Source: Oikopleura dioica (lineage: Eukaryota; Animalia; Chordata). Taken from it: a stretch of 64,000 nucleotides of DNA. This document shows positions 619 to 10,240 of the stretch, piece after piece. Made by a program: the position numbers and the translations under genes. The notes under the pieces were generated by a model, which made no database searches, was not told where the DNA came from, and was given only the letters and a program-made list of their open reading frames with translations. Numbering within the stretch: position 1 is the stretch's first letter; each line of letters begins with the position of its first letter. The stretch covers positions 12,400,001 through 12,464,000 of the forward strand of contig OU015568.1 in assembly GCA_907165135.1 (NCBI GenBank), given 5' to 3'.

Positions 619-3600
619 CTTTGCTTGACCTTTCCTTGGAGAGGCGGTTTAACGAATCGGCCAGGCGTTATCTTTCTTTTATCATCGCTGCTTCTGAAAA
701 CAAAATTTACAATATTTCATAAACAAGGGAATTATCAATTGCCAATTGCCGAAATTCTTCGAATAACATTTTTTTTAATAATTATAATAAATATACTCCT
801 GGAGAAAAATAGGCCTCTTGAAACATTCTTGGACCAAAATTAACAATCGACTTAGTTTCCTTGTTGGTTGATTTTGAAATACCGTCGTTGTAGCGCGCAA
901 AACAAGGTCTATTTTGAGCATTGCGTCAATTACAATAATTTTAATTAATCAAATAAAGGATCAAAAAAAACTACTTCTTTTCAAAAAACAGGAAAAAACT
1001 TTCGAATAAATTTTTTAACAACGCTGTTCTGTAGCCGGAAAGAAGCGCCACCGCATCCTGAAGAAGGAAAATCGGCTAAAAGGGGTTGAACTTGAACCAA
1101 AGCCACATTATCCTCAACAAAAAGAGGCCGATTAGACTTTTTAGAAAGCGCCGCCGCAAAAATATAACGCAAGTTTGAACAACAATCCCTTTATAACGGA
1201 TCCGATAAGTTTCCGCTTAGCTGACGAAAATCGCGAAGTCTTGCGGTTAACGTTGAGAGAAATATTTGAGGCTCGATTTGTAAACAGATTTGGACTTTCA
1301 AGATTTTTGCAGAGGAAGAGAATTGATTCAAAATAGAAGTTGGAGGGCAAAACGGCCTTCTTTAAAAATAGAAATGATGAATTCTAGCGTGGCGATTCTA
1401 TTTTAGTCTACAGTTGGTCTTATATTTAAGGGTATCCTTTAGACTAGAGGCGTTTCTATAAGGGGTCAAGAAATTTCGATTCAAGGAGAATCCTTTTTAG
1501 AAAGATGAGAACAGCGCATCAAGGTGTGGTTTTTCGCGATGAAGAAAAGCAACAAGATAAAGCCGAGAACTGTCAAATTTCGCGATGGAAAACATAACAT
1601 GCTCTGATAAGCACAACCATAATTATTATGCTGATCTGGTTTCTTGACTCCTTGAAAACGAGGAGCGGCAATTCAAGTCTAACGTGGAACAACGCATAAT
1701 TATGAGATCTTTACTCGTCAAAATATGGCGGAAAAATTTGTGAACGAGATGAAAAATTTTCAAAACAACATTCAAGGGTCCATCGTTCAGGGAACGCACT
1801 GTAGGTTTCAACATTCATTCTCAAATACTGCTCAAAAATGTTTATTATAAAAAATTGCTATCTTTTGTTTTTTTTTCTCTTGAGCCGCAATGTTATCATT
1901 TTTAGACGGTCTTTTGATAAGAAAAGAATTAACAAAAATTAAAGTGCAATTACGGTAGTTAGCAAATGTTTCTCTGGCCGGATCTAGGCAGACAGATATG
2001 ACGGGGAACACCTGTTACAGAAGGGATAACCGCGTGTTTGACAGTCATGAATCCGCTTCATCAAAATTCGCGATCTGGCTTTCCGAGGCTCTATTTTTCT
2101 ACGTCCAGGTGTTTTTGTAAAATGATTTCACCGGCGTTCAAAATAACCCGGAATCAAGCCGAGTTAATGAGCGACGGCTCGGATCATCTACCACGAGGTA
2201 TTAAGCTTATCTCATATTAGAAGGCGTGGTCAATACGGTATTCGGGGCTTATACAGTAATGAGCGCATTTGCTAGAGGAAATATTAATTTGACCAAATCT
2301 GAGGCAAAAAAAAATGAACTTTTTTGCGAAAGAACGGGTTAATGGTTGAGCTTTAAAAATTGTCTCATTTCTTGTTCACACCCTTAATATAATAACTAAT
2401 GAATTTTGTATTGAGATCAATTTATATTTACCTTTTTCAACAAATTAAAATTTCAGAAATAGTTCTGTTTTTCGGCGATTTTTTCTTGCAAAACTCTCTT
2501 TTTTCGTTTTTTTCACAAATTTTTTCTCTGGCACTTTGAAAAAAAATTTGTTGACTATTTCTTGCGCTTAATTGTTTTCAAAATTGGAAATAAATCAAGG
2601 AGAATTGTAACTTTTTTTGCAATTCACGGTTCACGATTCAGAAGGCGCACCACCACCAGGGGTGCCTCTTGCTCCATAAGAGAGTACTTGGTGTCGCCTG
2701 CGGCAATCAGCGGGGCTGGATTAAGGGTGGCTACGGTGGTGGAGGAAGGCTAAGCGCACTCTTCGTATCCTCGGATAAGAAAATAAATCCTTGAGCACTT
2801 TCTGAAGGGATAAAAGGAAATTTTTAGAGGGCTTAGAAAAACACCTTCAAGAGAAGGAAATGAACTTCTAATTTTAACGAAAAAATAGAAAATTGTTATC
2901 AGCTTTTCAGCTTGAAAAACGGTCAATAGTTTGGAAAAGAAACTTGATTTTTTATTAGCTGACAGTATTTCGAGGAAAGGAAGAAGTTTTAAAATTTCAA
3001 AGATGAAAATTATTTCGTTAAATCTTCTCAATTTATCTTTATTTTTTACCTGTTTATTTTCACGGGCAAGCGCTATAATTAAATTATCAGTCGTACGGTG
3101 AAAAAACAATAAACACAAACGCCTGATAGAATTATTAATCAAGACCTTGAAACCAATTAACTAGCTGTTTTCATCCCAATCACGCTTAATCCCAAGAACT
3201 GCTGTTCTTTGACAACCCTTTTTTGATTCATCAAAAATAACCGTAACTCTTCCTCGCTTTTTTTTTATTTTTGGAATATGAAGAACATGGATTTATTTTG
3301 ATTTTATGCCGATGAAGTTATCGACCTTAAATCCTATCAACACGAAAATAAATTTCTTGGTGCGAAATTTGGATAAAGAGAGGGAGCACCCTAGCATGGT
3401 GGAGCTGCGCTAACGCTCGCCGCGCGCATTGGTGCAAAATGGCGCCCAAGACAGTCTCCCAATCATTAACTACCAACGAGTTGTTGCAGAAGTGGTTATC
3501 GTAAGGCTTTCTTCAGATAAGCACCAACAAGTAGACTTTGATGTGGGTGATTGTGTTTGTTAGAAATTTTAAGCATGAATTCATGGCAAAAAATAAAATT

Positions 3601-3628
3601 CTTTGAAATCAAAATGACTGTTTTTTAT

Positions 3629-4693
3629 TCAGTAGACTTTCAAAATTTGATTTTCGCAAATCAATATTTCTGCTTCAATGTTTCTCGACTCTTCCACTAC
3701 AGCCTTGAGATTTTCTTCACATTTTTTGAGATTTTCTTTCGCTTCTTTGACCAAACGTTCGCATTTTTGTTTTTTGCGATAAGTGACTTCTAGTTCAGTT
3801 TGAAATTGTCGAAGCTTGTCGAACAGTTCTTGACAGCAAGAAGTGTCAAAGAACTCATCAAAAGTCAACGAAGTATCGCAGTTTCCTTTCGGACAGGAAA
3901 ATTTTGCATCTGTTTTCGTGATTGGCAACGCGAGTGAGTCGGAAGAGCTCCAACAGATTTCACAAGTCGTTGGAGCTTCGAAGGGTTGGCTCATCAATTT
4001 TGTAAACCTAGCGAATTTCGGTTGATCCTTACCTGGACCAAAATCAAAAATGGTCCAGGTAAGGATTTTGGTCCACGTAAGGAAATGGTCCAGGTAAGGA
4101 AAGTCAAAAAGATTTTTTTTTCAAAGTAAAAAATCCGAAAACGTGACTTAAAAAAATTGTAGTCGACCCCCCTCTGAGAAATTTTTTTGAATTTTGAAAA
4201 TTTTTTAAATGTTATTTTTGGACTCAAACTGATAGATACAGGCAAAACGGACTAAATATCCGGAAGTATCAAATCTCCGGAATTGTCCAAATTTTTTTGC
4301 TTCCAAAATGCATGTTTTAAGTGTCATGGCCGACAGAAACCAAGTTGTAAAATAAGGGCGATACTAGCAATGTCGCCGAATGTCGCCGAATCTCGCTGAA
4401 TGTCGCCGAATCTCGCTAGAAAGACAATTTTTTAGGAATAAAAACAAAAATAACATGTTCGAGAGATTCTTTTTGCCATTTTTGATTTTGGTCCAGGTAA
4501 GGAAAATGGTCCAGGTAAGGATTTGGTCCAGGTAAGGATTTGGTCCAGGTAAGGATCAACCGCGAATTTCATCAACGAAAAGCGTTAATATCACACTTTA
4601 CCCGTGACATTCAGAGCATTCTTCTACCAATCCAACATTTTTAACAAACCTTTGATCGATTCTCTTTATATTGGATTCGATGTCGTCCAATTT
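3629..4693 (-). CDS. Cys-rich (zinc-finger-like) plus coiled-coil protein, 5' end not resolved
   Basis: ORF 3629-3997 (CEIC...CPKGNC...CC, then a heptad-rich tail) joins in frame to exon 4693-4602 (...EECSECHG|FTKLMSQ) across a GT-AG intron 4601-4008 that contains a MITE. Confidence 0.5.
4020..4561. mobile_element. Non-autonomous MULE/Mutator-type MITE, 542 bp
   Basis: TIR GGTTGATCCTTACCTGGACCAAA at both ends; subterminal TGGTCCAGGTAAGG repeats; exact 9-bp TSD GCGAATTTC (4011-4019, 4562-4570). Confidence 0.9.
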
Positions 4694-5019
4694 CTATCAT
4701 TTTTCCGAGGAACCTTCCTTATATCCGACCGTTCCTGAATCAAGCGAAGCGCTATTTATTCAAAGCAAATAATTGAGTCATTCAATTCAATAAAAACTTT
4801 CAAAAAGTTTTTCTGTATTCAATCAATTAAGACTTTGAATTCTTATTTTGTATCAATTTCAACTTCAAAATGCCTAAAAAGAAACGTTATTTAAAATTTT
4901 GCGTCAATTCGCCGGCAATTTAGTTTGTACTGGAGCAGTGCTGATTCAGCACTTCAGAAAAATTTATCTTTTTGTTTGACGCTTATCATTGTTTCCTAGC
5001 TCGGCGGGTGACTGGGTTG

Positions 5020-7087
5020 ATGCTAGGTAAACACGTTGCCTAAAATTTTCTTTTTAGGTTTCTTTCAACCCCATTGTGAGCGTTAAATCCCTGAAATCGC
5101 ATTGTCCGGTAATGTTGCGTAACGGAGTACGTAAAAATCGGGAAATTTTGGGAATTCGTGACCAGAGATAGCTTTTGCAAAAAATGTGGCTTGGAATTTT
5201 TGTGATTATAGAGCTGACCAGAGCTGCACGGCCGATATTTATCTTCCACGGCCTCAAGTCAAGAGTTCGAAATTAAAAACGAACGTGTACTAGCGGAACA
5301 GTCTTGAATATAAATTCAATTTGAAGTCATTATGAAATGGCGTTAAAAGAAAGCCAACTTTATTTTGAATCTAAATTTCAAGGATTATTTATTTTTATCA
5401 TTTGAAATGATGTTTCGAGTTTCGAGAAATAAATAATTTTTCCCATAATTTGAAAGATAAAATATTGAAGGTCTATTTTAACCTGAAGTTCGGCATTCTT
5501 GTAAAAGGAACATTCCCACGACTTCAACGACTTCCGCGGTTTTGTAGAGCAGCGAGCGCCTGGTACAATTATCCACTATGCAGATGTGGTAAGACTTATC
5601 GTTTCAAGCACCCTCTAAATATTTTCTCCCCAGTTCAACGGCGCGTCTTCTTTCCAAAATCTGCCCAAACAACATCTTGCTTATACAAAGGAGTTCTTAA
5701 AGCTTTCCGAACAGTATCCGGATGGAATCAACGTCGTCGCTTTTAGCCAAGGCGGACTGATAGGAATGGGTCCTGAATGATTTTCAAACAACTGTTTGTT
5801 TTCCTCAATCCTAAGTGTGGACCCTTAATTTCAGCTCGCTGCGTGCTCCAGTCAAATCAACACAATGTGCACACGTTTATCGCCATCTCAAGCTAGGGTT
5901 TTTAATTGTTCAACAACTCTTTATCTTTTCCTGACAAACGAACAAAGGATAACCCTTGAAAAAGCCCCCTGAACGGTCAATTCGGCGAAACCGACTATCT
6001 CCGCAAAAAGTACATAAAAGTCAACAAAGTAATCACTTAACCCTTATTAAAAAGAAAGTAAGAATGTTTTAGTTCAATTTGTATAAATATTTGTACCGAA
6101 AACGTGGACAATCACTTTCCATCGCGAATTACTGGCGCGACCCCTATCACCTGGATGAATACGCGGCTGCTTCTGAATACTTGGCTGTGTACAACGGCGA
6201 AACTCAGTGACCCGGGGTGAAAAGGACTTTCTCTTCTTTGCTTTCTTAATACTATTTACTCGGGAAATTAATTATTTTTTCTTCTGGGCTTGAATATCTA
6301 ATCTGAGAATCAAATCAATCAGCTCCTTCCCTCGCCCTTCTCAATTTTCACTTTTCACCCCTCCGTAGAAAACGCCCATCGATCCTGTTTGGGCTGATAA
6401 TTTCAGGAACTGGTTCTATTTTTTTAGAAATTGTTTTCAAGAAAACGTGGAACAAAGCTGAAAAGGGGTGCATCATGAGTTCTATGCGTGACCTGCTCTG
6501 TTTTGGCGATGCAAAAAGTTACGCCTCAAGAATTTAAAATTGCTTGCATACAGAAATTGCCGCTATCCGGCTTTACGTAAATATGGGACATTCTTAAAAT
6601 TGCCGAACCACAAAAAAAGTCGACTGAGGCAGCTAGTTACGATTGGTGGGCCAAATGATGGAGTTATTGAACCTTGGCAGTCGTCACAATTTATAAACTT
6701 TCGGTAAGTGATTTTAATAATCCTCTCAATAACGAATTCAAAGAGAAAACTCCACGGAAATCGCAGATGTATCAACATTCGACTTTTACAAACGCAATAT
6801 TTTCGGCCTAAAAACTCTCGAAGAAAAAGGTCGCTGGAAAAGACACGTTCAAGACGGCGTAAATCACCACCAGAAACTGGGCTCTTGAGTCGCGAAAAAC
6901 CACCAAAGTGCAATTTTATCTTTCCTGGTTAAAATTGAACAAGTCCGAGAGGTTATCACTTTGAGCCCTTTACTAGTGGATAAGGAATGAAACCGTCTTC
7001 GACAATTTTATCTGGCCATATCTTCGACAAGACCGACCTGCTTTTGAGTGGATGAATGATCCTGCACAAATTGAGAAAGATAGCTAA
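5020..7087 (+). CDS. PPT2: Palmitoyl-protein thioesterase (PPT2-like), multi-exon
   Basis: Exon translations RPIFIFHGL, GINVVAFSQGGL (catalytic Ser), GQFGETDYL, IANYWRDPYH, LVTIGGPNDGVIEPWQS, FGLKTL and WIRNETVFDNFIWPYL match the PPT2 family. Start and the last splice donor are uncertain. Confidence 0.85.
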
Positions 7088-7319: not shown

Positions 7320-9746
7320 TTATTTGAAGTAGTGTTGAGAATGATAAGAGTCAGAATACTGGGAGTAGTAGCCGGAGAAGTGAGACAGCTGTGATGGATT
7401 TCTTTCCGGCAAGCTCTGGGTCTCGCTGTAACTCGATCCGACAGCGCTGTCATTTAATCGAAGATCGTAATTGTCGTCTGGCAGTTCTTCGATAACGACT
7501 TGATTTTGCTCCTGCGACAAAGCGGCAACTGGGACTCTACGTTGGTGGTCGATCACGCGACTTTCGACGTATTCGGGGATGAAGAAGTTTGAAAGATATG
7601 TTCCTCGGTAAACTCCATTCTGAAAATAACAATTTTTGAAAAACTCTTTTGCAATGAAAAAATACCTCGATAGATTCAAGAGCTTCAAGTTCGACTTTAT
7701 ACTCAAGCTCCTCCATGACAGCAAGCTCGTGGTAAAACATCACAATATCCCAATATTGCTTCATCGTATCATTGTTGAATTCTTCAATTGTTTGGATCCC
7801 CATCGTCGCTAGAATCTAGGTTCAACAAAATCGCCCGAAACCAAGATCGGGTTTTATCGGGTTTTTAGTAGGTCGGAAAAATCGGATCGGGTTTTGTTGG
7901 ATTTTATCGGGTTTTTGTCGGGTCGGAAATCGGGTTTTTATCGGGTTTTTTGTCGGATTTTTGTCGGGTTTCCTACAAGCAAAAATTAAAAAAAATGAAG
8001 TGAAAAGAAGGTCAAAAACTCATCTTGAGCGGATTTTTTCAACAATTTTCGAGGATCATTTATAATAATATTTAGATTTTTGTACATTTTCCCATTGTGC
8101 ATCTCCTAGTACGATAAAAACGCCTGGTCGAATACGGTAGAATATAGAATAAATAATCCCACCCCTGTTTATATGTTTAGAAAGCTTAGACATTGCTGAG
8201 TTGCAGTTTAGGGGGTTAGGCCTTGCCGAGGTCACATGACCTCAAATAACCCATGGGGTTGAAAACAGGGCCGACTATTTTCCCCGGCGCCGAATTTTGC
8301 CCGATTGTCCGACTTTGCCCGATTTTAACCTCGTAAAATCTAGCCCTGCGCCGCCCGATTTGCCCGCCCGCCCGATTCTTGCCCGACTTGCCCGGTCCCA
8401 ACGTTCCAACATGGTTGAAAATAGTTGGAGTACTAAAGCCTTCAAGCTCAGGCGTTCTCTGAAATTCCTCGCCGAATTTCATTCTCTCAATTGACAGAAG
8501 ATTATCTTTGGTAAGATTAATGTGAATGTGCATTTTGAGTAAAAAAGGGCAAGGGAGGCTATTTAGACCGACTGTGATTGGCTGAAAAGGCAAGAAAAAC
8601 CCGACGAAATTCCGACAAAAACCCGATCCTACGTCGGGTTTTGAAATTTTCAGGATCGGGTTTTGTAGGGTGAAAAAAAACCCGACAAAACCCGATAAAT
8701 ATCCGATCCGATATCGGGTTTTCCGGGCATCGGATTTCGATTTGTTGAACCTAGGCTAGAATTTTATTTCGCATGGTGGAAATGCGAGATCTGTCTGATT
8801 GATTCAAAGGGAGACGAACATCTCTGGGGAAGTTGAAGCGGCTTTTGATTTGATTCGGTCTGATTCCAGCAAGAATCAGCCCTCGGACAATGATGTCCTG
8901 CTCATGGACGAGCTGCCAAGATCCAACACGATAAGTGAGGTAGATATCCAACCTAAAAGAAGAAATCTTCAAAACGCTCTCTCTCTTTCCTTTTTTACCC
9001 GCAAGGATCTCCATCGACAAGAAGAAAACAAGGCACATTCCATTGATCAAGCCTGGCTAAAAGTGCACGAGTGGCTCTATCAGGTTGTCCTCTTCCTGTG
9101 ACAAGAAGACAATCCCTGGTCGCGCTGAATCTTTCTTCTACAAGTCGCTGGTAGATTGCGAATTTCTCCAAAACAAGGACGAACTGTGGAAGTTGCACCT
9201 CATTCAAATTTATGTCCGAGATATCAGGTGGTATTTGCCCTCCTTGTTCGGAGGCAAAATTGCAGCCGGGGAGGTGGAGATGTCCCTGAGCTTCACCCTT
9301 TGCAGCTTGATGGAGGCGTAGCTCAGGACGAGCGACGGAGAGGATATACGCTAGCTCATCTTTTAGAGGCATAAAAATAAATGAAGAGACGCAGAGAGGA
9401 GTTTTAAAGCCTTTCCTACAGCAGTATCAACAACTCTTTGATCTTGAAACAATCCAGGATGCATGTAATAAAGTCCTCGTTTCGTCGAGCTGGCTCCCTC
9501 TCTGATCAACCTGTGCACTGTGATCCCTACTGTATAGAGCGAAAGAAATCTGTCTGAGAGGACTGACATTCGATATGAATCCTGCCTATTAAAATACTCG
9601 CTCCTTCGACTTTTGTTGGGCATATTTACTTCTACTCGGGGCTGGAAGTCCTGCTGACTTTTTATGCTCTCTGTCATGCGCACGAGTATAAACTCAAGGT
9701 GATAGTAATGCTTGGGGAAGAGTACTTTTCGTTGCAATGAATTCAT
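7320..9746 (-). CDS. SPO11: Meiotic topoisomerase VI A-like protein SPO11, interrupted by a MITE in a coding exon
   Basis: TKRGLYY (catalytic Tyr motif), LFQDQRVVD, LVLEKFAIYQRL, LVTGRGQPDRATR, LLVDGDPCGLDIY. The C-terminal KVELEAL...YLSNFFIPEY lies on the far side of the insertion (7815-7320). Confidence 0.93.
7816..8754. mobile_element. hAT-type MITE, 939 bp, inside SPO11
   Basis: TIR CTAGGTTCAACAAA; subterminal ATCGGGTTTT arrays; exact 8-bp TSD GCTAGAAT (7808-7815, 8755-8762). Confidence 0.92.
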
Positions 9747-10240
9747 GACTTGACTGATACACACCCCTGAATTCAATTCAGGTTAGAGTTTTATCTTGAC
9801 TCAACACTTTATTCAAATAAAAAGACAAAGAGGAAAAGAAGAGCCAGACAGATAAATGAAGACAAGTTGGTAGTAGCTTGAAGGGCTCTGGTTGTGTGAG
9901 TGTTTTTGTGATTCTACAAGATTTCTGGCTACTATTTTAGAATTTTTTTATCAATTGAAGAATGAAACAGATAAACGAATATCAAAATAGAGGGTTGATA
10001 ATATCAAAAGTCAAAAAATTAAAGTAAGCTTTTTTTTATTTTTTTTCTAAAAGTCGAAATTCAAAAAGAAGATGACGAATAAAATAGTTTGTGGAATAAG
10101 GCCGAAGTCGGGGCAGTAAACTCGATAATCCTAAAGAGGCAAAATCCACCTATTGTACCGCATAATGGGGTAAAGGAGTTTTGAGTAGCAAGTTTGCAAT
10201 AGCAGAAGGAGATTTCCTCTTTGAACGGGCATAATTCTAA

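Follow-up and report, generated by a model that had tools for sequence, protein, structure and literature searches.

A MITE insertion splits a coding exon of SPO11 in the Oikopleura dioica reference genome and probably creates a truncating allele

The SPO11 gene of Oikopleura dioica is interrupted in the OKI2018_I69 reference genome by a 939-bp non-coding element that lies within its third coding exon. This arrangement raises the question of whether the reference records a broken allele or an intron in the making. The initial annotation of the locus had offered a null allele and a nascent, transposon-derived intron as alternatives of equal plausibility. Both readings stand, but the equality does not, as empty sites, the poor context of a GC donor and a competing GT donor shift the evidence towards a null, unfixed allele. 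We analyzed a window of 64,000 nucleotides of the reference, and all coordinates below refer to this window, in which the gene is on the minus strand. The match to the reference is literal, in that the public protein CAG5088877.1 is an exact translation of exons of the window.

Reading of the frames, together with an assembled and translated model, gave a gene with the following parts.

7320-9746, minus strand: SPO11 gene, four exons, ATG at 9746-9744, stop at 7322-7320
9746-9416, minus strand: exon 1
9360-9415, minus strand: GA-AG intron between exons 1 and 2, 56 nt, frame shift from 0 to 2
9359-8999, minus strand: exon 2
8953-8998, minus strand: GT-AG intron between exons 2 and 3, 46 nt, also used by the public gene model
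8952-8755 (3a) and 7807-7666 (3b), minus strand: exon 3, split by the element
7620-7665, minus strand: GT-AG intron between exons 3 and 4, 46 nt, retained in the genomic contigs L001 and L002
7619-7320, minus strand: exon 4, ending in the stop at 7322-7320

Exon 1 matches the Pfam domain TP6A_N (PF04406; E 1.7e-11) and contains the RGLYY motif, and SPO11 thus has the 5Y-CAP domain with its catalytic tyrosine. The Toprim domain TOP6A-Spo11 (PF21180) was recognized on exon 2 with an E value of 8.4e-19, and the match continues into exon 3a at 2.1e-3; the acidic E and DxD motifs of this domain are present as LVLEK and DGDPCG. Sequence matches in the PDB were archaeal Top6A and yeast Spo11. The 56-nt GA-AG intron is supported by the sequence AVDELAYIL, which is unbroken in two relatives (P0003 and P0004). 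With the insertion site empty, the SPO11 model is open and encodes 443 aa, and apart from the insertion no further lesion was found in the assembled model. The dN/dS ratio is 0.017 against the wild haplotype L001 (dS of 0.11) and 0.093 against the sister-lineage contig L002, demonstrating that SPO11 is under strong purifying selection. A second SPO11 paralog, raised as a possibility in the initial annotation, was not found in the 64,000-nt window. An exact-product look-up with the exon-2 open reading frame returned no match, and when exon 3b, exon 3a and the longest open reading frame of the element were used as protein queries, P0151 was found and, beyond it, no more than one weak and partial relative (P0152); comparison of P0151 with the PDB gave a chance match only.

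The insertion has the anatomy of a cut-and-paste transposon flanked by a target site duplication (TSD).

8755-8762, minus strand: upstream TSD copy, ATTCTAGC, 8 bp; its last two bases (8756-8755) are a candidate GC donor
8751-8753, minus strand: in-frame TAG contributed by the terminal inverted repeat, truncating SPO11 after 297 codons
7816-8754, minus strand: the element, a MITE of 939 bp (non-autonomous DNA transposon)
7808-7815, minus strand: downstream TSD copy, ATTCTAGC, 8 bp

The terminal inverted repeats (TIRs) are perfect over 14 nt (CTAGGTTCAACAAA, at 8754-8741 and 7829-7816). The element starts with CTAG/GTTCAA and ends with GAACCTAG/, where the slashes mark potential splice junctions, and it presents the same ends in either orientation. 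Translation of exon 3a proceeds through ...STMRNKILA to a stop codon and resumes past the element as ILATMGIQT...KVELEALESIE. When the element and one copy of the TSD were removed in silico, the joint read ...MRNKILATMGIQ..., which restores the C-terminus of SPO11 as the initial annotation had claimed. Its placement of a MITE in a coding exon of SPO11 was likewise correct in all coordinates and junctions, as judged from the TIRs, the TSD, the domain matches and the empty sites, and the immediate stop that it had described for an unspliced transcript is found in frame at 8753-8751. The observation of an element that splits a bona fide SPO11 exon is therefore confirmed, and because empty sites exist (in L001, L002 and the DNA run X25) the arrangement is an insertion and not a product of chance.

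Uninterrupted exon 3 was present on three independent contigs. Contig L001 derives from a metagenome assembly in ENA and represents a wild haplotype with 97% identity to the window; since it retains the introns, it is genomic DNA. Its nucleotides 1-727 align to 9483-8755 and its nucleotides 720-956 to 7815-7579, such that the 8-nt overlap corresponds to a single copy of the target. The same empty site was seen at 87% identity in L002, a Logan contig of SRR23998815 from a sister lineage. The third contig, 1,383 nt in length, comes from X25, the DNA run that best matches the window (word share 0.76). It has 0 differences from the window over 8758-10069 (1,312 nt), passes from 8758 to 7810 with omission of 947 nt, and extends for 71 nt more across the joint. 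The comparison of presence and absence across haplotypes that the initial annotation had proposed thus turned up the empty site in all three sources. Because an empty site survives on a flank that is identical to that of the window, the insertion is judged to be very young and unfixed, and these alignments indicate that the empty state is ancestral and the insertion derived, very recent and not fixed. With empty alleles in X25 (on the identical flank), L001 and L002, the insertion is not fixed or common as an introner would be, and the insertion allele is known here from the reference assembly alone. That assembly was made from one male with a heterozygosity of ~3.6%, and its haplotypes were merged afterwards (PMC8008620). 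A diploid-level contig depth was considered as a sign of homozygosity for the empty site in X25; this was rejected as the depth is a whole-contig mean, and the argument on zygosity was dropped because an assembler can lose a low-coverage branch that enters a repeat.

A separate contig from a wild metagenome (L004, from ERZ27290310) is 97% identical to positions 7603-6223 of the window and diverges completely upstream of 7603, inside exon 4. A further insertion or a rearrangement on that haplotype could lie behind this break (L004:1-125), as could chimerism of the contig.

The 8-bp TSD is of the length produced by hAT-like elements, and the overlap of the alignment blocks in the empty-site contigs L001 and L002 is exactly 8 nt. 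A TIR of 14 nt and open reading frames without a Pfam match fit a short-TIR element that carries no transposase, and comparison of the element with Rfam and Pfam gave no match above threshold. The terminal motif of hAT elements is of the YARNG type; the ends observed here read CTAGG, which is not a clean YARNG. P-element-like and Merlin-like elements also generate 8-bp duplications, and the hAT-like label is therefore provisional. Within the window we found neither an autonomous partner with the same ends nor a second copy of the element. In X25, the summed contig depth was 2,000-6,500 for the element versus ~150 for its single-copy flanks (13-44x), and several indel variants were present. These data indicate a young multi-copy family with roughly 15-40 copy equivalents, and the depth provides the multiple dispersed copies that characterize a MITE.

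The element contains dense subterminal CCCGAT/CCCGAC repeats in inverted arrangement. Its two arms (7840-7975 and 8595-8725) each hold ~10 copies of CCCGAT/CCCGAC with runs of A between them and are mirror images of one another; in sequence they have the look of subterminal transposase-binding repeats. The G-rich center at 8270-8416, made of repeated CGGGCAA units, is 86% identical to a segment of a Tara Oceans contig (L003:2324-2480). No copy of the TIR was found in L003, and the CGGGCAA module may be common to another element or may have been captured from elsewhere. Metagenome scans for the junction of either allele and for the ends of the element gave no match. Folding prediction for the RNA of the element pairs its two ends (-300 kcal/mol, z = -5.2), which could either help or hinder their recognition.

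Candidate splice sites were scored with a rough position matrix built from 52 heuristically inferred AT-rich short introns of the window; the matrix is crude and biased to AT-rich contexts and was used only to rank candidates. All splice outcomes given here for the insertion allele are predictions. Three features are central to them.

8749-8750, minus strand: GT donor inside the TIR (CTAG/GTTCAA), canonical, ~38th percentile of inferred local introns
7816-7817, minus strand: terminal AG of the element (..GAACCTAG/), the acceptor of the public model and of the GC-AG option, weak, ~8th percentile
7816-8819, minus strand: intron of OKI2018_I69.PAR.g11999.t1, 1,004 nt, GT-AG, which removes the element plus 19 codons (VRLPLNQSDRSRISTMRNK)

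The best predicted pair is GT 8750 with AG 7816, which would excise a 935-nt intron and leave the TSD plus CTAG, 12 nt that include TAG. Because the residue of 8-bp TSD and CTAG amounts to 12 nt, splicing of this kind would always preserve the frame, and in the present codon phase CTAG reads as TAG. The GT donor thus lies behind the stop and offers no rescue, a point already made in the initial annotation, and the element's own GT-AG pair does not restore an open frame. Among the sites supplied by the element or the TSD, only the target-derived GC donor does so. Joining GC 8756 to AG 7816 would remove a 941-nt GC-AG intron, in frame and free of stops, with addition of 6 nt. This option had been laid out in the initial annotation with its two added residues, the CCTAG acceptor at the terminus and the GC at 8756-8755, all of which we located at the same places. 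The donor had also been called weak, and its context indeed ranks at the 2nd percentile of inferred local donors, below the median of random GT sites. Absent from that annotation were the public 1,004-nt intron (GT 8819 to AG 7816), a GT-AG intron that is in frame and costs 19 codons, and further in-frame routes such as GA 8770 to AG 7809, which is free of stops, has a donor at the 58th percentile and results in a net loss of five residues. Both candidate acceptors (7816 and 7809) fall at the 6th-8th percentile.

Three RNA runs (X6-X8, bulk oligo-dT) were considered as a test of splicing. They show fixed differences along the neighboring calnexin-like gene and zero depth over SPO11 exons 1-3a. 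Because the fixed differences occur all along the calnexin-like gene, these runs represent another O. dioica lineage, and they were rejected as a splicing test, the lineage being divergent and the zero SPO11 depth uninformative. In the upstream calnexin-like gene, the reads of these runs skip ~200 nt of the 3' UTR (window 9885-10090) and have long loose ends at 10172 and 10467, which suggests either indels specific to the lineage or an exon structure unlike that of the window.

The deposited gene model deserves separate comment. CAG5088877.1 (Oidioi.mRNA.OKI2018_I69.PAR.g11999.t1, label P0153), found in the 90% cluster of the exon-2 open reading frame, has 318 residues that are the exact translation of 9372-8999, 8952-8820, 7815-7666 and 7619-7320. 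It begins at an ATG (MPLKDE) inside the 56-nt GA-AG intron, whereas the true start is the ATG at 9746, and as a consequence it is without exon 1, TP6A_N and the catalytic tyrosine. The 19 residues that it drops are conserved in L001 and L002 and align to THPLKEQDIKRIKD of archaeal Top6A, near the end of the Toprim domain. Judged by sequence, the deposited SPO11 model is wrong twice, first in having no exon 1 and again in the deletion of 19 Toprim residues.

Taken together, we consider it probable that the reference carries a MITE insertion allele of recent origin that is not fixed and that ends the SPO11 reading frame after 297 codons, both with and without use of the splice sites in the element. 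In this view, a copy of a non-autonomous cut-and-paste transposon that is active and multi-copy (8-bp TSD, hAT-like) would recently have entered exon 3, landing on one haplotype of the Okinawa laboratory culture of O. dioica, and the single-male reference assembly would by chance have kept the insertion haplotype. A read-through transcript would stop at the TAG of the terminal repeat, and an mRNA spliced at CTAG/GT and the terminal AG would retain 12 bases including the same TAG. By either route SPO11 would lose its last third, which holds the C-terminus and the final part of the Toprim domain. A recessive sterile allele could ride, harmless, in heterozygotes, and loss of function with heterozygosity of the allele is the likeliest state suggested by the sequence. 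Loss of function is favored because the context of GT 8750 is ordinary and the GC donor ranks so low. Counting against it is the fact that SPO11 itself carries a GA-AG intron. About 11-12% of O. dioica introns are not GT-AG, including GC-AG and GA-AG introns (PMC8008620; bioRxiv 2023.05.09.539028), and because the species tolerates such introns the element could instead be a functional nascent intron, bounded by GC 8756 and AG 7816 with two extra residues (KIL-IL-ATMG) or by GA 8770 and AG 7809. The locus would then be a functional intron-gain polymorphism, which we regard as rather unlikely. Both routes are in frame and stop-free, the GA 8770 donor has a good context, and the larvacean Fritillaria borealis is known to have introns derived from MITEs (reviewed in PMC11282704). 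However, the GC donor shares next to nothing with the context of local donors, and a canonical AG/GT donor 6 nt downstream of it would compete for splicing and leaves the stop in place. The two acceptors score poorly, an intron of 941 nt is ~20 times the usual local length, and the allele is unfixed, with an empty allele on an identical flank. That a permissive spliceosome of O. dioica excises a fresh MITE in frame from SPO11 pre-mRNA through GC-AG or GA-AG sites, making this a case of polymorphic intron gain in a chordate, is accordingly put forward as an unlikely outcome.

The deposited model would be right about its third intron if splicing from GT 8819 to AG 7816 yields a shortened, partly functional SPO11. 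This intron is canonical and in frame, the model uses exactly these sites, and the deposited annotation made use of RNA-seq hints in general. Nevertheless, a gene finder restricted to GT-AG would choose 8819-7816 by default, none of the indexed O. dioica RNA runs searched matched the stretch, and the same model also leaves out exon 1 and the GA-AG intron, a sign that RNA gave it little support here. Because the segment that it deletes is conserved, close to the end of the Toprim domain, and because exon 1 is missed, we view this splice as improbable. Finally, an assembly artifact or a somatic event in the sequenced male would explain why X25, the best-matching DNA run, shows an empty site; contig-level data, however, are unable to show absence of the insertion. 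Three empty alleles hold a single copy of the 8-bp target that is perfectly duplicated here, and the TIRs are perfect as well, a combination that marks real transposition and not misassembly; long and short reads from the sequenced male itself served to polish the assembly (PMC8008620). Given the perfect duplication, an insertion outside the germline is highly improbable.

The insertion has practical consequences. In the OKI2018_I69 reference, which is widely used, SPO11 is interrupted, and work on larvacean meiosis should take the empty-site model. The insertion also shows very recent activity of the MITE family, possibly inside the laboratory culture. The design of the ends (CTAG/GT ... AG/ plus an 8-bp TSD, with 12 nt left) also makes a testable prediction on intron gain: under selection for insertions that can be spliced, copies in exons are expected to avoid the one codon phase that turns CTAG into an in-frame stop, and it is in this phase that the SPO11 copy sits. 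If polymorphic intron gain were instead true, the exonic MITEs of the reference genome would be a standing pool of nascent introns and not broken alleles.

A literature search for O. dioica SPO11 or for introners in O. dioica gave no match. The closest known systems come from other organisms. In maize, Ds and dSpm insertions in exons are partly spliced out by way of sites in the ends of the elements. The SPO11 insertion resembles these alleles in that an exon is interrupted by a cut-and-paste element, bounded by TIRs and flanked by a TSD, which has cryptic donors and acceptors at its termini, gives a phase-dependent outcome and is polymorphic. Unlike the maize alleles, it resides in a host whose spliceosome is unusually permissive and whose genome is very compact, and the SPO11 allele is known from sequence alone.

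Introners are DNA transposons that generate introns, known from Micromonas, dinoflagellates and others (Huff 2016, Gozashti 2022; PMC9860276, PMC11282704), and for Oikopleura, transposon insertion has been counted among the indirect lines of evidence that introns were gained (PMC3443670). As in introners, the ends of the SPO11 element and its TSD can supply splice sites, and for this family excision at CTAG/GT...AG/ beside an 8-bp TSD would add precisely 12 nt to the mRNA, keeping the frame in either orientation. The SPO11 element differs in its size of 939 bp, in being unfixed, in its splicing being a prediction only, and in the retained CTAG, which is an in-frame stop in this phase. The closest host is F. 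borealis, in which MITE-derived introns are fixed and short, mostly have AG-AC or AG-AT ends and have been shown to be spliced (Henriet et al. 2019, reviewed in PMC11282704; PMC13326754). In contrast to those introns, the SPO11 insertion is private or rare and the non-canonical introns of O. dioica are mainly G[ACG]-AG. What the two systems share is a larvacean host, elements with TIRs and TSDs, and species-specific positions in coding sequence.
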